Shown here in pieces: positions 2,663 to 42,186 of a stretch of DNA of 64,000 nucleotides (positions within the stretch are counted from its first letter, which is position 1; every line of letters begins with the position of its first letter). The notes beneath the pieces were generated by a model, which saw only the letters and a list, made by a program, of their open reading frames with translations, was not told where the DNA came from and ran no database searches. The DNA lies in contig NEEC01000021.1 in NCBI GenBank assembly GCA_002189035.1, positions 1,302,001 to 1,366,000 of the forward strand. The letters are read 5' to 3'. A program made the translations under genes and the position numbers. The DNA is from Utricularia gibba. Taxonomy: Eukaryota > Plantae > Magnoliophyta.

Positions 2663-3842
2663 GAGTTAATTGGCTATGTAGGCCTCTGCAAAAAACTTCT
2701 TTGCTAAATGGCCCTATTTGGTATATTTTAGTTAAATGGCCCTATTTTATGTAGGTATTAGGTAAATAGCCCTATTTTTATCATAAATTAAAAAATAAAA
2801 TAATTATTATTTACGAAAAATATAATTAATGTATATATAATTCTATATTAATTAATGTTATGATTTTATATTTTTATTTCTACTCAAATTATATATATTT
2901 AATGATTTAATTTTAAAAATATAACATAAATATCAATATGAATATTTAGTAGTTATATTAAAATGTTTTCATAATAAATTAATATAAAAAAGATATGAAA
3001 GTATTTATACAAAATTATTATAGTAAATTTTTTAACTTAATTTATTTAACCCAAAAATATGTTATGGTACGTCGCCTAATGATATAATTAATACAAAATA
3101 GTATTTCTCAATATTTTTTTAAAAAATTAAATGTGAAAAATCTATTAATCAATATTTTTATCTATTTAGTATAATATTCGATTTTATACCTAATTTATTA
3201 AGTTATTTGACTAATATATTTTCATATTTAGTTTTTTTAAAAAAATTAAAAAAAATTATTATGTATTAATACATTATTAGATGATGTATCAAAACATATT
3301 TTTGGATTAAATAAATTCAATTGAAACATTTGATGCAATAATTTTTTATAAATATTTCCATTCTTTTTGAAATACTAATGAAACTAAGAATACTAAAAAA
3401 ACTAATATTATCATGAAATTACCTAAAATATAAAAAAAATTCATGATAATTATGCAAATTAATCAGTGAATTATAACAACAATCAATATCACAAAAAAGT
3501 TTCATTAGATTATGAAAACATTTTTAGTATAATCACAAAATAGTCATATTGATATATATGTTATATTTTTACAATTAAATAATTAAATATATCTAATTTT
3601 AATAGAAATAAAAATATAAATCGAAATATTAATTATAAAAAATTATATATATACACATGTAATGTATATTTAATATTATTTTATTATTTTTCGTAATAAC
3701 AATTATTTTATTCTTTATTTATGATAAAAGTAGAGCTATTTACCTAATACCTACAAAAAATAGGAATATTTAGCTAATGTCTACCAAATAGGGCCATTTA
3801 GCCAAGAGTTTTTTTGGAGAGGGCTATATAGCCAATTCACCC
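2663..3842. mobile_element. Non-autonomous Mutator-like/foldback DNA element with long terminal inverted repeats
   Basis: Left end gagttaattggctatgtaggcctctgcaaaaaacttctttgctaaatggccctatttggta matches the reverse complement of the right end (gggtgaattggctatatagccctctccaaaaaaactcttggctaaatggccctatttggta). Inverted homology continues about 300 bp and resumes internally (2997-3140 vs 3220-3360). G-starting long TIRs are typical of MULEs. No TSD found. Confidence 0.75.
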
Positions 3843-4682: not shown

Positions 4683-6455
4683 TGGAATCTGAGTGGTGTG
4701 CTGGACGAAAACCGTCGAGGTGCTGCGCATTTATAGAGGGAAAAAAAATGGAGTTTCTGGATCCAGAAACCCTTTGGATGGATGGGGGAGGGTGGGTACG
4801 GATACGGGATGACTCGACACCTACTATTTCAACTCGGATGCACAACTTGGTAAAATTACATTAACTGGATTTTGGAAAACTCATTTCCATTTTTAACTAT
4901 TTTTGTCTTTTAGTGAAAATAATGTTTTTAGATAATTATTTTTTTATCTTAAATTTATTAATATCTCTCATAATAACTTATATTTTTACATTTTTATTAA
5001 AATTTATCATACTTATTATTTTATTATTTTATCTCATATACTTTTTTATTTTATTCTTTCTTATCTTATCCGATCCCGATTTTTTTGGATTTTCCCTCTT
5101 TCTTTTTAAAATTGATAATATTATATTTTAACATTATATTATAATATATTATAATTATTAATATATTAATTAACACATGCAACTACTAATTATTAATAAT
5201 TACATAATTACTTGAAAATAATAATGTTGTAATAGCACCTATGTAAAGAATAATTTATTAATTATTATTTTTTTTGGAAAATAAGATAATAAATGGAGTT
5301 TCAAATTTTAAAATTTATTATATAATATTAAAACTCATGTAATCATATTTACAATAGAATATATAAAACATTATATTATCAAAACCAAATAATTTTGAAC
5401 GCAACCAATATTAGGGTAAACAAATTATTAGAACTTCTAATAGTCAATAATAGAATCCACAAAGTAAACTCTTCAATATAATATAAACTTCAAGATCAAT
5501 TTTCAACAAACAAATGTTAAATTAGCATGCATAATAACAGATCTCAATTAAAAAAACACTGCCCTAATTCTATGAAGGAAGCGCGGCCGAGAGGGATTGG
5601 GTAAGGTAATAAAGAATAAAATAAAAGAAATATCTGAGATAAAATAATAAAATAATGAGTATGGTAATTTTTGGTAAAAATATAAAAATATGGATTATTA
5701 TGAGAGATATTAATAAATTTGAGATAGAAAAAGAATTAATTAAAAATATTATTTGTACTAAAAGACAAAAATAGTTATAAGTAGGAATGAATTACACAAA
5801 ACACAGTTAATTATGGAATTTTTTCTGCATAACTCGGATTGATTTTTTAATAAAAAAAACATATAAATATGATATAAAAATAAAATTTGAAATAAATGCA
5901 ACATAAAATTAATGAACATGAAATACTAAAAGAAAATGATATAATGGTATCAAAGTCAAATAAAACAAATAATAAGAATGATTTGATAATTTTATGTATT
6001 ATTCGACCTGTTTTTTTTTTCTGAATATGAGTTATTGATGGATTGAAAACTTAGCTAGATAATAGCGACAGCTCCAATCAATCAATATTATGTGTATAGT
6101 GAGGTATGTTATGATAGGATACCAATCTATCATATTAGTAAGATTTTGTTTGATTTTACACTTAATTTTGACATTGGATATCAATTTGTTAAAAAAAACT
6201 ATGTTTTGGGGTAATATGCACGTCACGTTATAAAAATAAAAGTGAGATGCTTAGTATTTTATTATAGATAATAATACCCCAAATTAATTGTCAAATTATC
6301 TTCGATTTTGTCATCAATTTAGGGTTTTGAAAGAGAATGGGGAAGTTATTTTCTAAAATAGTTACTATTTTCATTAATTATACAATTTTATACACAATAT
6401 TAAAACAAGAAATGGCTACTCAGCCCCACGTCACAAACCAGATAACATGGGAATC

Positions 6456-6999: not shown

Positions 7000-7866
7000 T
7001 TTTATTCTCCTCACGTGTTTCTTAATATGGCCAACCTTCTATATTTAATGCAAAAAAACCTAAACAATGGAAGGTTGTGTTTTGTATAAGTTATTATTTA
7101 AGAAAGTATTCATTATAATACATATGGCATAACGTTTTGTAATTAAATTTATATATAAATTATTGAAATACTCATGTTAACAATAATATTTTTTTAAATA
7201 AATAGAACATGTTCTATAATTTGAAGTTATACTTTACATTATTTATAATATAATTAATTTTAATATTATGTGAATATAATCAATTTTTGTTGAGTTTAGC
7301 CAACAAAAATTAAAACAATGTATTACACAAACACTATTTACAATTACAAACAAATTTAATCGGATCAAAGACTAGTTTTAATTTAGAATGAGTATAAAAA
7401 TAATACTACATTATAAAATGAATGTGAAATAATTAAATATATAATATATTACATATCATCGATAATCGATTAAGTATAATCTTATTTAATGTGATTTCTG
7501 TTTTTTTTTTTTTTGCATATTTAGATTTCATGTTTGCTCATCCAATTTATTGAATCTTTAGTTTTAACATGTTATTTTTATTGTATTATGATATATTGTG
7601 AGAATTAAAGCTAAATAAAAGTAATGATTAGTTTATTTGACAAAGAAATAGAGAGTTTCATAACATATTTCACCAGCGCGGGCGACGTTTCGTGTTCCGT
7701 ACATGGGCATGGAGCGCATCGAGGTTGTAATAATATTATCAACCTCGTTTGCGAGGTGTGCAGCTCTGTCGAAATGCATTGATGCATCTGACCTTTCGAG
7801 TTCCGATGGTGTGAGTCTACATAGTACCCTGAAGCTGCATCGTGATTCATACTGAGAGTTGCTGCG

Positions 7867-9475
7867 ATGGTAGACTCCGTGGGCAAGGAGCCATCTTGGC
7901 CAGGCGCATCGTCTTCTTTATGGTCAATGAATAAGGTTGTCGGATCCCACGTTTTTACGGTCAGGAATTTCTCCTTGGCCAGAGGAATCGGTGCTGGGGA
8001 ATGCATATGCTCCGATGAGATTCGTGTTGGTGGCTGCACGTGGAAGATTGAACTCTATCCTGATTCTCGAATTACACACCCTGCTGATAGTGTCTCAGTT
8101 TATCTCAGATTTGTCGCAGGGGAGATCGGCACAAGGGCAACTTGTAGGATGATTTTTTCAGATCAAAGAGGAGAGAAAGACCACCTGGTTATAGAGTGGG
8201 AGATACCTTTTAAATTTGGTTACTTAGTCACTTAGTTGTGAGAGCATCTGTTTCCACGCAATTCTACGTGACACTTCCATTTTGTTTATTAAATTTTCGG
8301 AAATCATTGTGTAGATGTAGTTTTGTTTCCAGATTTCCATTGAATATAATTTTCATTTTCATTATGAAAATCCATTAAAATGAACATAGAAAAGATGACA
8401 TCTCAAATTTCCAGAAATAATTTATATTATGTAAATAATTGTAAATAAAATAGAAATTTAGTAACTAAATTTCCGGAAACATATTAAATCTGACATTACA
8501 CTCCAAATTTCCGGAAATGTTGTGAGTCTCTTCTGCTCATCCCCTGGTCACATTTTTTGAACTTTTCTTTTGATCTAATTCATAATATGTAGTTATAAAC
8601 GCAAATATTGTTGATCGTAGTCCATGTTCCAAATAATTTAAATGGGATGATGTGTCGACTGGATCCTTCTTCAAAGGCGACTGTTTCCAGATCCGTTGCA
8701 CAGTCACTGTGTTGAAGCCGGCAAAGATACTGAACCCCATTGCGTTACCTCCTCCGGTTATAAATCTTCATCTACAGAATCTACTGGAAACTGGGATTGC
8801 AGGAGATGTAACCTTTCATGTTGCCGGAGAACTGCTCTCAGCTCACAAGGTGATTCTCGCTGCTCGCTCCCCGTTTTCAAACAACAGTTCTTCGGATCAC
8901 TGAAAGCCGGAGCCGGCAGCGTCGGCCCCATCAAGATTCAAGAAACGGATCCGCATGTCTTTAAGGTTCGACAGGAGATGCAAACTTTACACCAGTCATT
9001 GTCCTCATAGATTTCCTGTTCTTCACATTTTCATTCTCGCAGGCTGTGCTTCATTTCATATATAGCGACGCCTTACCCTCCTCGGATCCGCGCAAACCGG
9101 CCGAAATGCACAGAGATCTACTCGCCGTTGCGGATCGATACGATATCTAACCTCTGAAATCACTCTGTGCGGCGCATCTCAGCGAGAGCGTCTCAGCCGA
9201 CACAGTTACTTCGACATGGGCACTTGCAGAGCGGCACCATTGTGCTTCTCTGAAGTCATACTGCACAGAATAGGTCGCTGCACTTCAAAATCTTCAAGGT
9301 ATAACGGTACCCATAAACGTTTTTCTGGTTTTCAATCAACACCTTGAATTCTTTCTCCTTTGCAGATGTGGTGAAGTCCAGTGATTTCAAGGAGATTCAC
9401 GCAAGCGAACCATCAGTGTGCGTCGATTTTCTTGTCTCGGTCATCTGCTTCGAAAGGAACTCCTCTACTAATTAG
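7867..9475 (+). pseudogene. MATH-BTB (BPM-like) pseudogene, copy 1
   Basis: MATH (HVFTVRNFS...VGGCTWKIELYP), BTB (DVTFHVAGELLSAHKVILAARSP) and BACK-like exons are collinear with copy 2. In-frame substitution stops occur at TAG 8233, TAA 8634, TAA 9148 and TAG 9271, with a frameshift at about 8870. Confidence 0.88.
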
Positions 9476-10158
9476 AGAACTGCCGAGTTGGAGACTTCTT
9501 TGAAGTATGAAATACAGTAAAATAAATGAATGCTATAATTTTTTTTCTTCAAAATTTTGTTTTTGTGAATCCCTTATTAATTATCTGAGAAAAATGATTA
9601 TTTTAACTAAAATTTTTTGATTAATTGTATGATAGAGAATGGACAGATGGTAAAATGTCACGTTCTACGCCCATTATTCATTTTGAAAACTATAAAATAT
9701 ATTTGATCTTAAATCATATAATTAGAATCTTAATTTAATTACCAATCACCATTAAGATTTAAAATTTTAAAATTAGGTTTGAAGGATTTTGATTTTGTAT
9801 GGGGTATTTTGTAAATAAAATTTAAAACTTTTAAACAGAGAAATAGAGCTTGATGACTTATTGAATGGGGTGTATTATAAATTTGGGCATTCTCTTAGCA
9901 TTTCACGAGAAAAGAAATCATTTATACTATACGTCTGGCCACTTTTGTAATATTTAGACAGAGTGGTCGACTTTTCGAATTCCGTACACTGGAATGTAGG
10001 GCATCGAGATTGCAGTAATATTATCAGCCTCGTTTGCGAGGTGTGCATCCATCTCTGCCAACTATCACCGCATTGATGTATCCGACCTTTCGAGTTCCGA
10101 TGGTGTGCGTCTACATAGTACCGTTAAGCTGCATGGGGATTCATACTGCGCTGCTGTG

Positions 10159-11496
10159 ATGGTAGACTGTGTGGGCAAGGAGCCATCTCGGCCAGGCGCA
10201 TCGTCTTCCGTATGGTCATTGAATAAGGTGGTCGGATCCCACGTTTTTACGGTCAGGAATTTCTCCTTGGCCAGAGGAATCGGTGTTGGGAAGTCCATAT
10301 CTTCCGATGAGTTTGCTGTTGGTGGCTGCACGTGGAAGATTCAACTCTATCCTGACGGCGATGCTACAGACCGCTGATTATATCTCAGTTTATCTCAGGT
10401 TTGTCGCAGGGGAGATCGGCACAAGGGCAACTTTTGAGATGATTTTTTCGGATCAAAGAGGAGAGAAAGAGCACCTGGTTCCGAAGGAAAAGGATCCTTT
10501 CGAATTTAAACACTTAACCATTGGACGGTGTCTCTAATGCTCCTTGCACAGTCGCATTTTTAAAATTTTTATAGAGTTTCTTTTGATCTACTTGAGAAGG
10601 TGTTGATGTTATACTGTTGATCATAGGGATGGCCCAAATGCTTTCAATGGGATGATGAATCCTTCCTGAAAGGCGACTGTTTCCAGATCTGCTGCACAGT
10701 CACCGTCTTGAAGCCGGAAAAGATACCCAAGCCAATTGCGTTACCTCCTTCTGATATCAATCTTCATGTACAAAATCTGCTGGAAACTGGGATTGGAGGA
10801 GATGTAACTTTTGATGTTGACGGAGAATTGCTTTCAGCTCACAAGCTGATTCTCGCTGCTCGCTCCCCGGTTTTCAAACAACAGTTTTTCGGATCACTCA
10901 AAGACGGAGCCGACAGCGTTGGCCCCATCAAAATTCAAGAAACGGAAGCGCAGGTTTTCAAGGTTGGGAAAAAGATGCAAACTTTAACAGTCATTCTCCT
11001 CACAGGTTTCATATTCTTTTGGTCCTCGCAGGCTCTGCTTCATTACATATATTGCGATGACTTACCCCACTCCGACACCTCCTGGACTCACACTCCGACC
11101 GACATGCATCGACGCCTACTCTGCGTGGCGGATCGATACGATATCGAGCGTTTGAAATCACTCTGTGCAGCGCATCTTAGCGAGAACGTCTCAGTCGACA
11201 CAGTTACTTCGACTTTTGCACTTGCAGAGCGACACCATTGTCCTTCGTTGAAGTCATACTGCATTGAATACGTTGCTGCGCTTCAAAATCTCCAAGGCAA
11301 ACCCCTGTTCTTAAAAGGTTTTCAGGTTTCGGCGTTTTCAATCAACATGCAAAATTCTTCCTACTTTGCAGATGTGGCGAATTCAAGTGATTTCAAGGAG
11401 ATTGAAGCAAGTGAACCTTCGGTGTGCTTCGGTTTTGTTATGTCGGTCTTCTCCTTCGAAAGGAACACCTCTGCTAAATCCAATGCCTTCAAATAA
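10159..11496 (+). CDS. MATH-BTB (BPM-like CUL3 adaptor), copy 2, 4 exons
   Basis: Exons are about 10159-10527, 10627-10962, 11032-11296 and 11372-11496. MATH, BTB (DVTFDVDGELLSAHKLILAARSPVF) and ALLHYIYCD...ADRYDIERLKSLC motifs are present. Two -1 shifts (about 10372 and at the acceptor 10627) may be artefacts. Confidence 0.8.
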
Positions 11497-34845: not shown

Positions 34846-35883
34846 TCAGCTATTAGATGCACATTCAGGTGGAGTATTGGGGTGCCTTCCTGCATCGCTG
34901 CAATAGTCATACGTCACATGATCTTCCCTGACTCTTTCGTACTTCCTCTGCTGAGCCTTCCCTAGTTTCCAGTACTTGGCCTGATTCCACCAGTAGCCAG
35001 GCCCGTAGCACCCTCGCCGGACTCCGTGGGGCACCCCCGATCTGGAAATCCATGTACTGGCCGCTGAAGGGCGCATAAGACCAGTTAACTTTGGTGCGGC
35101 CGCCGTCGGTGGCCCAGTCGCTGCCGTCCCATATGCTCCCCGTCACCTTCATCGGCTGCGCCGGGAATGCGACCCCGATGGGGGTGTTGTTCTTGAACAC
35201 CCTGATCGGCGTGTCGTCCACGTAGAATCTGGAATCGGGATTGGGGTTAGAGCCGGAAAGTGTAACTGAGAGATGAGATTTTTCTGTGTTTCTGGTTACA
35301 CGATTTGGTGTTGGTTCCAAAGGATTTTGTACGAGTGGAAATCTTGTTTTGGGTCGAACCAGAGGTTCAGTCGTTGCTCTCGGTCGCCTTCCCCATCGGC
35401 GAAGACGTTTGTTTGCAGGGTTACCGGTTTGCCTTCGACGTCGCCCAGGAACTCCATGTCCAGTTCATCGTGGCTCCGGCCCTTCGACGTCAGCTGCCAA
35501 AAGGAGCATCTAATCTACTCATGTTCTGGTTTTGAATCCTGTCGACGATGATACATACGTAGAAGGCGGTGACTACGCCGGCGGTGCTCTTGTTCTCCAG
35601 CTTGATCCTCATATGGAAGAACCCCGAGCTGTAACTCAGCTTCGATTCGAACCCAGAACCTGCACGCAGAGAGAATGAAGACGTCGACAACCAACAGCAA
35701 CACATGTCTCTGTCAGAGAAGCCAACCGGAGAGCGAGTCGAGGGAGAGCTGCAGCCTTTCTCCCTGATCCAGCACAGCTACATGATCCCATCCCCAGGAA
35801 ACGGCGTACGTTTCATCAAAACGGCAACTCGAACCCGCTGCGAACAGCACCAGAAGCAGCGTTGAGAAGCGCACGGAATCCAT
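34846..35883 (-). CDS. XTH: Xyloglucan endotransglucosylase/hydrolase (GH16), 4 exons
   Basis: Signal peptide [23 protein letters not shown]...GVVTAFY, catalytic [16 protein letters not shown] and YDYCSD...PPEC are present. There are two -1 G-run losses at about 35036 and 35012. Confidence 0.93.
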
Positions 35884-36221
35884 TGAAAAACACGTTAGGC
35901 GACGCCCCAACCCAATTCTGCCTCTGTCTGTATATCCACTTATTTATTTGCCTTTTCTTCCTCCGGTGGTGTGAAGAAGAAGGGAGGCTATTCTCCATAC
36001 ATTATAATACAATACTAATCTTTTTAGTATATAAAAAATTGTAGACTAATAATAATGGATTGAATGTAATATTTTTTTAATATAATTCATATTTATTGAA
36101 TATTTTTCAAATATTATGATCCGATCCATGAAATACTTAATTTCAATAAAATTACTATCTATTGTGAAGCGTCACAGTGACTATCCAAACTGTAAAAGAG
36201 TTTTACAAACCTACGTCATCT

Positions 36222-36773
36222 TTCGATTTGGAATATGTTGTAAGAAGACACGTTACAAGCCATCGAAGTATGCGATGAAAAGGGATTACGTGCGATGAGA
36301 CGAAGAAGAAGGAGAAGAAGGCGCTGCGCGTGACGAAGGCGATGCACCACACGGCATTGCAATTAGGTTCAAAAAATTAATTATATTGTAAAATAATAAT
36401 CATCATTTTTTAAATGGATTAAATTTATTTATGAATTTGAATTAAATTTAATCTCAAATTGAACCTATGATTTATACAATAAAATTTTCCAAATGTTGGA
36501 TAAATTTCAAAACTTCTGTTGTAGATCTATATATGCCCCAAATAAAAAAAATTGATACCATAAAATCTTTCAAACCCTAATCAAATTTCAAAATTTTTAT
36601 TACGTATGTGTATGTATGCATACCCCAAATCAAAAAATTGACACGATCAATCCTGACAACCTTACTCAAGTTTAGGGATTTGCATTATGAAAGGCAACAA
36701 TAGATATGATTCAAAGCAAATAACCTTTTTAATTGCTTATTTCAAGTCTGACATTTGCCTTCTTTCAGTAGCA
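36222..36773 (+). repeat. Left direct repeat (LTR-like) flanking the satellite
   Basis: Homologous to 39079-39713 from atttggaatatgttgtaagaagacacg to catttgccttct..cagtagca. Confidence 0.9.
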
Positions 36774-39079
36774 TCTGGACCGGGCCCCATGCTGGCCCGG
36801 GCTTAATTGAGTGCTCAGGCTGGGCCGTATTTTAGCATCTGGGCAGGCAGCATCCACTTTGTGGGCTGAGCTGAATCCGTTTATTGAGTTGAGTAGCAAA
36901 TTTCCTGAGCCGAGCCGCAATATAATCTGGGCCGGGCTCAATGGAGTGCACGGGCTGGGTCGTATTTTAACATCTGGGCGGGCTGTATCCACTGCGGGCA
37001 GGGCGGAATCCTTTGTTGGGTCGAAAAATTACTGGGCTAGGCCTCATTAGAATCTGGACCGGGACCCATTATAGGCCGGTCTCAATGGAGTGCACGGGCT
37101 GGGTCGTATTTTAACATCTGGGCGGGCTGCATCCTCTATGCGGGCTGGGCGGAATCCTTTGTTAGAGTTTGTCGCCAAATTACTGGGCAGGGCCTCATTA
37201 GAATGTGGACATTATGGGCCGGTCTCAATGGAGTGCTCGGGCTGGGTCGTTTTTTAACATCTGGGCGGGCTGCATTCACTATGCAGGCTGCGCGGAATCC
37301 TTTTTTTGGGTTGGGTCGCCAAATTCATGGGCCGGACCTCGTTAGAATCTGGAACGGCCCATTATGGGCCGGGCTCAATGGAGTGTTCGGGCTGGGTCAT
37401 ATGTTAACATCTGACCAGTCTGCATCCACTATGCGGGCTGGGCGGAATCCTTTGTTTGAGTTGGGTCGCCAAATGCCTGGGCCGGACCTCGTAAGAATCT
37501 GGACCGGGCCCCATTATGGGCCGGGATTAATGGAGTGCTCGGCCTGGGTCGTTTTTAACATCTGGGCGGGCTGCATCCACTATGCGGGCTGGGCGGAATC
37601 TTTTGTTTAGGTTGGGTCGCGGTAGTACCCGGACCGGACCACCGTCTGGGCCGGGCTCAATAGAGAGCTCGGGCTGGGTCGTATGTTAACATCTGACCGG
37701 GCTGCATCCACTATGCGGGCTGGGCGCAATCCACTGTTTGAGTTGGGTCGCCAAATTACTGGGCCGGGCCTCATTGGAATCTGAACCGGGCCCCATTATG
37801 GGCCGGGCTGAATGGAGTGCTCGTACTGGGTCGTTTTTTAACATCTGGGCGGGCTGCATTCACTATGCGGGCTGGGCGGAATCCTTTGTTTAGGTTGGGT
37901 CTCCGCATTCCTGGGCCGGACCGCATTTGTACCTGGACCACGCACGTTCTGGGCCGGGCTCAATGGAGTGCTCGGGCTGGGTGGTATGTTAACATCTGGC
38001 CGGGCTGCATCCACTTTTCGGGCTGGGTGCAATCCACTATTTGGGTTGGGTCGTCAAATTCCTGGGCCGGTTCTCATTAGACTCTGGACCGGGCCGCATT
38101 ATGGGCCAGTGTTAATGGAGTGCACGGGCTGGGTCGTATTTTAACATCTGAGCGGGCTGCAATCACTATGCGGGCTGAGCGGAATCCTTTGTTTGGGTTG
38201 GGTCTCCGAATTCCTGGGCCGCGCCTCATTAGAATCTGGACCGCGCCCCATTATGGGCCGGTGTCAATGGAGTTCACGGGCTGGGTCGTATTTATCATCT
38301 GGGCGGGCTGCTTTCACTATGCGGGCTGGGCGGAATCCTTTGTTTGGGTTGGGTCGCCTAATTCATGGGCCGATCCTCAGTAGAATCTGGACCGGGCTCC
38401 ATTTGGGGCCGGGCTCAGTGGAGTGCTCGGGCTGGGTCGTATGCTTACATCTGACTGGGCTGCATGCACTATGCGGGCTGGGCGGAATCCTTTTTTGGGT
38501 TGTGTCGCCAAATTCCTGGGCCGTGCCTCATTAGTATCTTGACCGGGCTCAATGGAGTGCTGGGACTGGGTCGTATTTTAACATCTGGGCGGGCTGCGTC
38601 GACTATGAGGGCTGGGCGGAATCCACTGCTTGGGTTAGGTCGCCAAATTCCTGGGTGGGGCGGCATTAGTATCTGGATCGGGCCCCATTCTGGGCCGAGC
38701 TCAATGGAGTGCTCGGACTGGTTCGTATTTTAACATCTGGGCGGGCTGCATCCACTATTCGGGCTGGGCGGAATCCTTTGTTTGGGTTGGGTCGCCAAAT
38801 TCATGGTCTGGGCCTCATTGGAATCTGGACCGGGCTCAATGGAGTGCTCGGACTGGGTCGTATTTTAACATCTGGGCGGGCTGTATCCATTATGCGGGCT
38901 GGGCGGAATCCACTCCTTGGGTTGGGTCGCCAAATTCCTGGGCGGGGCGGCATTAGTGTCTGGACCGGGCCCCATTCTGGGCCGAGCTCAGTGGAGTGGT
39001 CGGGCTGGGTCGTAGTTTAACATCTGGGCTGGCTGCATCCACTATGCGTGCTGGGCGGAATCCGCTGTTTGGGTTGGGT
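36774..39079 (+). repeat. GC-rich tandem satellite, about 15.5 monomers of ~152 bp (variants 130-135 and 143-151 bp)
   Basis: The anchor (c)aatggagtg recurs at about 36806, 36941, 37085, 37228, 37378, 37530, 37660, 37812, 37963, 38115, 38267, 38418, 38552, 38704, 38839 and 38991. Confidence 0.97.
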
Positions 39080-39713
39080 GCTATTTGGAATATGTTGTAA
39101 GAAGACACGTTTCACGGCATGGAAGTATGTGATGAAAAGAGATTACGTGCGCTGAGACGAAGAAGAAGAAGTTGGCGCTGCGCGTGGCGAAGGCGATGCA
39201 CCACACGGCATTGCAATTAGGTTCAGTTCAATAAATTTAATTATATTTGAAAATATTTTTTAAAAAATAATTATTCTTTAAATGAATTAAATTCATTTTT
39301 AATTTATTTTTTGAATTTAAATAAAAATCTCAAATTAAACCTATGATTATACAATATTTCAAAACTTTTGTTGTAGATAGATGTACACATACTACAAATC
39401 AAAAATTGATTCGATAAGATCTTCCAAATCCTAATCAAGTTTTGAAATTTTTATTACGTCCGTGTACGTATGCATACCCCCAAATCAAAAAATTGACACA
39501 ATCAGTCTTCCAAACTCTAATCAAATTTCAAAATTTTTGTTACGTATCTGTATGTATGCATACCTCTAAATCAAAAAAATTGATACGATCAATCTTCCAA
39601 ACACTAATCAAGTATAGGGGTTTTCAGAAAGGCAACAATAGATATGATTCAAAGCGCATAAGACCTTTTTATTTGCTTATTTGAAGTTTGACATTTGCCT
39701 TCTTGCAGTAGCA
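39079..39713 (+). repeat. Right direct repeat (LTR-like), TGCTA...TAGCA termini
   Basis: Paralogue of 36222-36773. It is about 80 bp longer because of one extra 86-87 bp internal unit. Confidence 0.9.
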
Positions 39714-40019
39714 ACTTCCTAAGAATGGTTTCATGGCTTGTAGAAACTAAGAAGAGAAAGGTGTTTCTTGACTTCCATAAGCATTTGTTGATGTATATTT
39801 AGAACATCAAGATGCATTGTAGCGAATAACTCGAAAACACTCATGGTAAACATTTTATAGGAACTTAAGAGGAAGGCAGACATATATGAACATCATCAGG
39901 GAAGCTATGCTAATGCCAGAAATGCAATTCATGTGCAGCCAGAGGTGGAAAACAGCATGTTGAGAGTAAGGGGGAATGGAGAAACCTGGTGATGAGCATT
40001 TGAGGAGAGGTGGGGAGGT

Positions 40020-42186
40020 TTATAGACCGAAGTTGCAGGCCTGCACATACTCGTTCTCGTAGTCGACGAACTTGGTCCAAAGACTGCGGAACTGAGGGAT
40101 GGCTATGTCGAGCCATGGTTTCATATTTCCGTTGAAATGGATGACGGCTGCGTTGTTGATCTCGTCCATGTTGATACTTGGGTTGTAGCCAAGCCCCAGG
40201 ACATGCCAAGATTTGTCTAGTGGTTTTGTAGTGGAGTAGTATGTGATCAAGCCAGGAGGCAGTGTCCCTAGCTTCCATAGTGTTCTATTCTCATTCTGAA
40301 AAAGAGAGAGAAGCACTTATATAAAGGAAGCAGACATACTGCAAAATCAGATCCTAAAGAATCACGGTAACCATGCAAGTCAAAGGAACAAGATGCTATA
40401 CATCAGCGATGCAGAGATAGGGTTATAAAGATGCCATTTGGATGATGGGTGAGTTTCGAATCATGCAAGTTCAAGAAAGACAAATCTAATGAAAAAGTTG
40501 AAGGCTAGAAAAAAAGCAAGCAAAGAAAGACATGCAAATTTCCAGGAGGATGGTATTAAGAAACTTAAACCACAAGTATTAAGTCTCACCAGATTCTGCC
40601 AATAGTGGTACTCTTCAGTGCACTTCTCGCGTCTCCAGGCATCCAAATCAAAGAAGTTCATCCCATAAGCCCAAGCGCATGCTTTGGGACTGAATTTCGC
40701 CTTGATCAAAGGATGGGAGAAGTTCATGTACTGTGCATAACGATGGAAGGACCAAAACATGTCTCAACGGCTCCGTTTACCTTCCCATCCATATCAATTT
40801 TCCAGAGCCCGTCAAATCTTTCTGAACCACTATATCATCATCAAGAAACAAAATCTTGTGCAACTTCGGATACATTTCAGGCAAATAGAACCTCAGATGA
40901 TTTAGTATCGAGAGATACTTTGGATTCCTGAATTTCATGTTGGTTGTGTCCTTTGTTGCATTTTCAATCCTATTGTCGAAGTAAAATTGCTGCAACTTGG
41001 CTGATTCCAGCTGTTTCAGCACAGGGACATAAGATGAGTTCAAAAAGCTATAATCCTCCACAGCCTTTACTTCTATATGAGCACCACCATAATCCCTCAT
41101 CTTAAACATCACCTGCATGGCTCCTAGATTCATCTTGTCTGTAACAACATGGAAGACATGCTTCCTTGGCTCTTCAGTGTTTTTAACAGCTGAGTTTACA
41201 ACAACTGATGCAGCAATCACATTGTCAGAAAAATTGCATAGTGATAAAGCTTTGGATCCTCAATCTCTGCCTTAGGAGGATTCCCTTCATCTGAATACTT
41301 GTCAGGATGAGCAATCCTTTCTTCCATCAACCTCAAAGCTAAGCAATGCAAACTCTTCGGAATTGACTTGGCAGCAATCAAATTCGAAAAGGCACCTTGC
41401 TTTTTAGCCTTGGTTAACTGCTCATTCAAAGCAAAAATGGTATCTTTCAACTTATGAATTTTCAACTGATTATCAAAGGATTCTTTTGCATCGGCTATCA
41501 CTTGCCTAGTGTACTTAATTTTCTCCTTCACCTCCTTCTCCAAAATCTTCAGTACTGGTTCATCAATCGAATTTGCATCCGACTCAAAAAGTGATCTATA
41601 TACTGGCTTTGTAAGAAACTCGGTGAAATCCCGTGATAGTTCAGCAAACACCCGGACGAGTTTTGAGTTCTCAAGTTTAAGTTTCCTCGCATAGGAAGCA
41701 TAAGCTAAAACCAAACTTTTATGATCGTCAGCTTGCTTCCAGATCTGGTCTAGCCTAGGCTTCAACGGATCTGACTTCGACACTAAAATCGATCTTCTAT
41801 GATAATTTAACCCGGATCCAATAGAGTTACTAGGATGAACCTAAATTGCGGGTAACCGAGTCAATCATAGGTACATTTCACATGCTCAAGAAACCAAATT
41901 TCCAAGAAAAAAACACGATCTAAAGCTTGCTTTAAACAAACAGTCGCTGAAATAATTCAATTAAAAAAAGGACCAAAATGCAGCAGAGAAAAAATAGGAA
42001 AAAAAGCACAAAGCTCACCGGTTCAAGGTCGGCCGGATCTGCAGATGTTGAAGGGAATGAAAGAGCGAGAAAGACGAAAATGGCAACCGGCAAGAAGGCG
42101 GCGAATCTGAAACCAATTGAACCTCTGAAACGGCGGCGGCGAAGGCAATCCGTCCAGATATTCATCCGGAACAGACTCCAATTCAT
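40020..42186 (-). CDS. GAUT8: Galacturonosyltransferase 8 / QUASIMODO1 (GT8), 3 exons; three apparent homopolymer frameshifts
   Basis: [49 protein letters not shown] and WHVLGLGY...QACNFGL* are collinear with QUA1. Exons are 42186-42019, 41840-40590 and 40295-40020. Confidence 0.95.

Follow-up and report, generated by a model that had tools for sequence, protein, structure and literature searches.

A G-rich tandem array enclosed by diverged direct repeats between XTH and GAUT8-like genes of Utricularia gibba: anatomy and possible origins

Introduction

Most of the spacer between the 3′ end of a GAUT8-like gene and the promoter of an XTH gene of Utricularia gibba is occupied by a non-coding block in which a segment of 0.55 kb occurs twice, once on each side of a 2.3 kb tandem repeat. 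Did this block enter the locus as a mobile element, or was it built in place? The original prediction left two answers side by side, an undescribed non-autonomous LTR-type element and a structure born of recombination. We analysed the block together with the whole 64 kb stretch of DNA in which it lies (hereafter, the window).

Structure and position of the block

Repeat finders and sequence reading define a left direct repeat (DR-L, 36226–36776; 551 bp, AT-rich, 31% GC) that is homologous to a right direct repeat (DR-R, 39083–39716; 634 bp), and the two enclose a G-rich tandem array (36777–39082). The repeated segment is called A below, the block is written A-array-A, and all of its features are given on the plus strand. 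The predicted order of direct repeat, satellite and direct repeat was reproduced by Tandem Repeats Finder, by a repeat finder and by sequence reading. Its left limit at 36222 requires a small correction: a repeat is present there, but the first 4 nt (TTCG on the left versus TGCT on the right) fall outside the homology of the two copies, and DR-L starts at 36226. The shared homology has sharp ends and extends from ATTTGG (36226/39083) to GTAGCA(T/A)CT (36776/39716). Repeat periods of 22–23, 86, 152, 287/303 and 2857 bp were found in the block, and the repeat finder detected no inverted repeats in the region.

Pairwise alignment of DR-L and DR-R yielded 84% identity over the aligned columns and ~99 gap columns, which derive mainly from the AT-rich middle and from an internal tandem repeat of 86 bp. 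This tandem is present in ~2.4 copies in DR-L (36470–36673) and ~3 copies in DR-R (39356–39615); the additional 86 bp copy and extra AT-rich sequence account for the greater length of DR-R. The heads and tails of the repeats are 91–93% identical between the copies. The best-conserved part is the GC-richer head of DR-L (36226–36371), which shows 93% identity to 39083–39225 and contains a minus-strand ORF of 23 codons at 36286–36357. The GC content of the direct repeats is 30%, versus 57% for the array.

Both neighbours are cell-wall genes encoded on the minus strand. In the XTH gene (glycosyl hydrolase 16; 34846–35882, with a Glyco_hydro_16 match), the ATG is located at 35882, 344 bp from DR-L, and the block lies upstream of XTH. 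On the other side, the GAUT8-like gene (glycosyl transferase 8; its 3′ part at 40020–41798, with a Glyco_transf_8 match) ends in a stop codon (40020–40022) 304 bp from DR-R. These coordinates agree with the predicted distances of ~340 bp to the XTH ATG and ~300 bp to the GAUT8 stop. Genes are densely packed in the window, where BTB/BACK, OSCA-type channel, PORR, IPT, ThiF/rhodanese and MLO proteins were matched, and none of the ten long ORFs scanned in the window matched a transposon protein.

The G-rich tandem array

A unit profile built from three clean units was searched over the 64 kb window. It detected 16 head-to-tail units of ~152 bp at 36777–39079, as in satellite DNA and in good agreement with the predicted ~15.5 × 152 bp, and no further units elsewhere in the window. 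Fifteen of the 16 units are 130–152 bp long and the last is truncated; three lack the first ~17–20 nt, and some variants measure 130–135 bp. The mean identity among units is 83%, and a partial dimer order of 287/303 bp is discernible within the array. Each unit is in turn composed of seven GGGYNGGG sub-units of ~22–23 nt with a doublet spacing of 17–24 nt, and at lag 23 the circular autocorrelation of the unit (0.42) exceeds the 99th percentile of shuffled sequences.

The G-runs of the array lie on the plus strand, and approximately 145 G-runs are present on one strand of the block. No G-quadruplex with loops of up to 12 nt was found in the array; raising the permitted loop length to 20 nt yields 30, a weak result. 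Relative to the unit consensus, the most frequent substitutions are G>A (41) and C>T (23), and the observed/expected ratio of CpG in the array is 0.74. This pattern would fit some methylation-driven decay without proving it.

The two edges of the array differ. Alignment to the unit model begins immediately after DR-L, without a spare base, and stops 0–4 nt short of DR-R. The first unit (m01, 36777–36928) is the most decayed, with ~76% identity to the other units, and this left edge resembles an old array edge. The last unit (m16, 38959–39082) is not decayed; DR-R begins where this unit stops, at position 118 of the 152 in the model, so that on the right the array breaks off cleanly within a unit. 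Local alignment revealed no likeness of the unit to the repeats, the flanks or XTH beyond shuffled controls (in 10 tests, the best score, z = 2.9 with p = 0.02, fell on one strand of a flank). The end of the direct repeat, CAGTAGCATCT, matches the sequence CATTAGAATCT of the unit at 9 of 11 positions, and this may represent a microhomology junction.

Independent support and copy number

Sequencing run X1 was obtained from a different individual of the same species, which shows 12 differences in 797 bp of flank (~1.5% SNPs). Contigs of this run span all four junctions, namely flank to DR-L (36068–36363), DR-L to array (36342–36982), array to DR-R (39005–39217) and DR-R to flank (39196–40300). 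Because contigs of an independent individual cross every junction, we rejected an assembly artefact. Contigs of another run, X6, are identical to the window across both inner junctions.

A repeat that is abundant elsewhere in a genome would give contig depths in the hundreds or thousands. The word depth in X1, an approximately 40× run, is 39 for the flank contig and 24–31 for the junction contigs. For contigs of ≥80% likeness, the summed depth is 24–47 in the repeats and does not exceed 75 in the array, compared with 39 for the single-copy flank. One AT-rich bin in DR-R reaches a depth of 110, which we put down to low-complexity matches. An unrelated AT-rich stretch at 36026–36105 does behave like an abundant repeat, with a depth of 359 in X1 and many loose ends.

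Neither the X1 assembly (~730 Mb) nor the 64 kb window nor either of two metagenome scans yielded another copy of the repeat or of the array at ≥80% likeness; the copy-number test was based on contigs rather than raw reads, and its 80% floor misses more diverged copies. The X1 contigs also contain no solo LTR-like copy of the direct repeat at ≥80% likeness. The metagenome scan with the repeat probe returned 0 matches, and that with the unit probe returned one chance match, a contig of 37% GC with no further similarity to the unit. A full-text search of papers with four strings of 16–18 nt from the repeat and the unit gave no match either. Within the 80% likeness limit, therefore, neither the repeat nor the array occurs outside this locus. 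The original prediction had named, as the outcome that would speak against it, a direct repeat and satellite that are single-copy; the nearly single-copy depth in X1 and the blank window and metagenome scans correspond to this outcome at ≥80% likeness. The long arrays and high genomic copy number of classical satellites are likewise not found here, as the array measures 2.3 kb, occupies one locus and has a depth of at most ~2× single-copy.

Loop-out between the two direct repeats would be expected to produce alleles that retain only one repeat copy. No joint skipping ~2857 bp, as expected of such an allele, was seen in the X1 contigs, which cannot show its absence. Joints within the array that skip 859, 133 and 636 bp, and one going back 1627 bp, do occur in X1; we did not accept these as real variants, since they rest on short contig sides at 80% likeness.

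Tests for mobile-element hallmarks

Two long direct terminal repeats (36226–36776 and 39083–39716) are what one would look for in an LTR retrotransposon, and the block could be read as a decayed, single-copy, non-autonomous element of the TRIM/LARD type with the direct repeats as LTRs and a satellite-like core, placed upstream of XTH by one insertion. The length of the terminal repeats is typical of LTRs, they surround a non-coding core that fills the gap exactly, and a one-step insertion would account for the whole A-array-A order. Precedents also exist: for sugar beet, non-autonomous LTR families, some of them single-copy, are reported whose internal regions hold satellite-like arrays (PMC13570524), and arrays are common in LTR elements, such as those between pol and the 3′ LTR of Retand/Ogre elements, which seed satellites (PMC11963269; PMC7004042).

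The finer features of the termini give a mixed picture. DR-R is bounded by TGCTA...TAGCA, as an LTR would be, and DR-L by TTCGA...TAGCA. Both termini read as predicted; since the first 4 nt lie outside the homology, however, the TG start rests on the right copy only and is not common to the left one. Target site duplications were scanned for at start and end offsets within approximately ±12 nt and lengths of 4–8 (3250 boundary/length combinations). None was above chance: the immediate flanks read CATCT versus ACTTC, and the yield of the scan, two perfect 4-mers plus two 6-mers that each carry one mismatch, is close to the number expected by chance.

Priming sites are missing as well. No iMet primer-binding site was found inside DR-L. 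The sequence that follows DR-L is TC TGGACCGGGCC, in which TGGACCGGGCC is how every array unit begins; if it served as a primer-binding site, the matching tRNA would have the acceptor stem 5′-CCGGGCC, and we know of no plant tRNA that begins in this way. The bases preceding DR-R (GTTTGGGTTGGGTGCT) do not form a polypurine tract, and no purine run of ≥9 occurs in the array. Moreover, the array abuts both repeats with only 0–4 nt to spare, and there is therefore no room for a primer-binding site or a polypurine tract. Together with the lack of any other copy or solo LTR at ≥80% likeness, these findings make the LTR interpretation unlikely, although it retains some weight. The original prediction had itself seen no convincing primer-binding site, polypurine tract or target site duplication, and our motif and target-site scans concur. 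Its proposal of an undescribed LTR-type element is not supported: the block is single-copy at ≥80% likeness and lacks the hallmarks, and if it were such an element, it would belong to a kind already described in sugar beet (PMC13570524).

Signatures of other mobile elements were equally absent. No hammerhead ribozyme was found: neither repeat contains a CUGANGA core, and no Rfam ribozyme was detected at E values of up to 1. At the same threshold, Rfam gave one weak and irrelevant match in the left flank. The window contains no tRNA gene, none of the boundaries of the block carries a Helitron end of the CTAG type, and the geminivirus nonanucleotide motif does not occur in the block. ORFs derived from the repeats matched no Pfam family, in line with the predicted lack of coding capacity.

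The sharp ends of the homology between DR-L and DR-R might alternatively reflect two separate insertions of one small transposon family on either side of an older array. Neither copy has terminal inverted repeats or a target duplication of its own, no further copies were found in the genome run X1, and both insertions would have had to strike the exact edges of the array. We regard this as highly improbable.

The order of an AT-rich block, a GC-rich sub-repeat array and a second AT-rich block also recalls rDNA spacers, in which a GC-rich sub-repeat lies between two promoter copies. The 2.86 kb unit of A plus array might accordingly have been imported, either as a fragment of an old rDNA spacer or as an extrachromosomal circle that re-integrated with terminal redundancy. 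DR-R contains at 39613 the sequence TATAGGGG, which resembles a Pol I start site, and the two direct repeats are natural substrates for loop-out. At the matching position, however, DR-L has TTTAGGGA, and the Pol I-like motif, searched as a loose pattern, occurs 3 times in the window. Depths in the thousands would be expected if the block were ≥80% alike to a high-copy rDNA spacer; the nearly single-copy depth thus excludes such likeness for the block. The formation of a circle, moreover, presupposes an earlier A-array-A. An imported origin therefore appears improbable. We give similarly little credence to the idea that the block is, or once was, a mobile carrier of satellite seeds that entered genic DNA without the usual retrotransposon machinery, whether by loop-out and re-integration of a 2.86 kb circle or as a degenerate LTR-like carrier with a core made up entirely of the array.

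Relative ages of the array and the direct repeats

The K2P distance between the two direct repeats is 0.073 in the head (143 sites) and 0.097 in the tail (99 sites). The corresponding value over all columns, 0.19, is inflated by the badly aligned AT-rich middle. Array units differ by a K of 0.18 on average. Since this exceeds the divergence of the repeat ends (K of approximately 0.07–0.10), the array, or at least the diversity of its units, looks older than the duplication of A. The closest pairs of units, m13/m15 and m02/m03, are 92% identical and hence about as different as the repeat ends, so that the last duplications inside the array would be about as old as the duplication of A. At substitution rates of 7e-9 to 1.3e-8 per site per year, a K of ~0.083 would date the duplication of A to roughly 3–6 million years ago.

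Origin of the block

We consider it reasonably probable that the block is a non-mobile repeat complex, private to this locus, that was generated by errors of local replication or recombination. A G-rich motif of ~22 nt would have expanded into the 152 bp unit, and this unit would have been amplified to a short array beside the AT-rich segment A. Later, A may have been copied to the far side of the array to give A-array-A, probably by an error of replication or repair, e.g. by template switching at microhomology or by a duplication with inserted junction sequence. All parts would since have decayed without homogenization. The anatomy, the confinement to one locus at ≥80% likeness, the missing transposon hallmarks and the relative ages come from the analysis itself; this order of events and the mechanism of repair are what we infer from them.

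Several lines of evidence favour local origin: the block occupies a single locus, has no transposon hallmarks and no room for priming sites, and displays duplication at many scales. Elsewhere in the window, at 7660–11480, there is a second tandem duplication of similar divergence. In addition, microhomology is present at one junction, the relative ages fit, and the setting is gene-dense without a transposon protein. The alternative of a recombination-born structure, which the original prediction had kept beside the LTR-type element, is therefore the one that we favour, because the block is single-copy at ≥80% likeness and bears no hallmarks.

The shape of the block argues in the opposite direction, since A-array-A with an array that exactly fills the gap is what the insertion of a single element with terminal repeats is expected to produce. 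If A and the array had simply been duplicated in tandem, array units would also follow the second A. The unit profile found none there, and a local model therefore has to invoke template switching or a succession of steps. The shape is better accounted for by an element with terminal repeats inserted in one step, but each sequence hallmark of such an element that could be tested is missing. Two further points count against local origin: the unit has no detectable similarity to A, the flanks or XTH, and the copy-number test, being based on contigs with an 80% floor, misses diverged members of an old family. As for related species, a search with the last exon of GAUT8 recovered only distant relatives (best protein identity, 92%); ten contigs from such relatives (L001–L010) are 74–78% identical in the GAUT8 exon (up to 92% over one short stretch) and have nothing in common with the locus in the flanks.

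Comparison with known systems

Template switching of the FoSTeS/MMBIR type gives tandem duplications with inserted junction sequence. The block is similar in its duplicated segment around foreign sequence, its junction microhomology, its single locus and its lack of a target duplication; it differs in that the insert, a 2.3 kb array, looks older than the duplication itself. Short satellite arrays that occur at low copy number in euchromatin (reviewed in PMC10048060 and PMC12692304) resemble our array in their ~150 bp units, their location in gene-rich DNA and a decayed edge unit, whereas the array described here is found at one locus and is bracketed by a 0.55 kb duplication.

Among retrotransposons, the sugar beet elements TRIM-03, -04, -11 and others (PMC13570524), as well as LARDs, come close to the block in their direct repeats of a few hundred bp, tandem non-coding core, total length of ~3.5 kb and location near genes. 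Unlike these elements, the block has no primer-binding site, polypurine tract, target site duplication or shared TG start, no other family member was found at ≥80% likeness, and its array touches both repeats. Ogre/Retand elements likewise hold a short array of private repeats between long direct repeats, in their 3′ untranslated region (PMC7004042; PMC11963269), but they possess gag-pol, unique sequence around the array and many copies, whereas the block has no coding content. Plant retrozymes are similar in that direct repeats of a few hundred bp enclose a core without coding capacity, and they are reported to carry ribozymes in their repeats (PMC4918200); the block has neither a hammerhead ribozyme nor a primer-binding site or polypurine tract. 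Whether read as a local product or as an LTR element, the block is not a new kind of structure, and its relevance beyond the XTH–GAUT8 locus is small.

The block nevertheless looks LTR-like to structure-based finders while occupying a single locus without any hallmark of transposition, which calls for caution in transposon annotation. The original prediction raised the possibility that the block may impose methylation on the two cell-wall genes. At the locus itself, 3.5 kb of repeat DNA spans the interval from 340 bp to 3.8 kb upstream of XTH and, judging from this position, could affect the regulation of XTH or the local chromatin.

Short ORF and Pol I start-like motif in the direct repeats

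The heads of the two direct repeats that bracket the G-rich array (36226-36371 in the left repeat and 39083-39225 in the right repeat) are the most strongly conserved portion of these repeats. Each head contains a short ORF on the minus strand (MPCGASPS...), consisting of 23 codons in the left repeat (36286-36357) and 22 codons in the right repeat (39143-39211), and the sole length difference between the two ORFs is an in-frame indel of 3 nt. The preservation of this ORF in both heads may be due to chance, to a role as a small upstream ORF, or to the presence of a regulatory block. The right repeat also contains the sequence TATAGGGG at 39613, which resembles a plant Pol I start site. The corresponding position of the left repeat reads TTTAGGGA, and a loose pattern of the motif occurs three times in the window.

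Sequence features of the flanking genes

An AT-rich stretch of ~80 bp located immediately upstream of XTH (36026-36105) is multi-copy in X1, a sequencing run from another individual of the same species. Its summed contig depth at ≥80% likeness is 359 versus 39 for the single-copy flank, and dozens of contigs continue from it into dissimilar sequence. The high depth could be explained by a small dispersed repeat or by low-complexity matches.

On the other side, the large exon of the GAUT8-like gene (40527-41753, minus strand) contains two to three frame changes, near 41230 and at 40780-40810. The matching region in distant relatives is a single 417-aa exon without interruption. Either the gene is a pseudogene, or the frame changes stem from small erroneous indels in the assembly. 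In the 3' untranslated region of this gene, X1 and another run, X4, both carry ~17 additional letters at 39927-39943 and a further GAG at 40001 relative to the window. This difference is due either to a polymorphic indel or to a gap in the assembly. X4 appears to be a target-capture library, because its depth (200-245) is confined to the GAUT8 end and an adapter was found at one contig end.

Other repeats in the window

A tandem duplication with a period of ~2.0-2.3 kb and 82-91% identity is present at 7660-11480, and its age is similar to that of the direct repeats beside XTH. An ORF containing BTB and BPM/SPOP BACK domains was identified at 10708-11493. In addition, the regions 2665-3840 and 4860-5811 contain three inverted-repeat pairs (arms of 99-193 nt, 83-89% complementary, with a spacing of 560-900 nt), which may be foldback or MITE-like structures.
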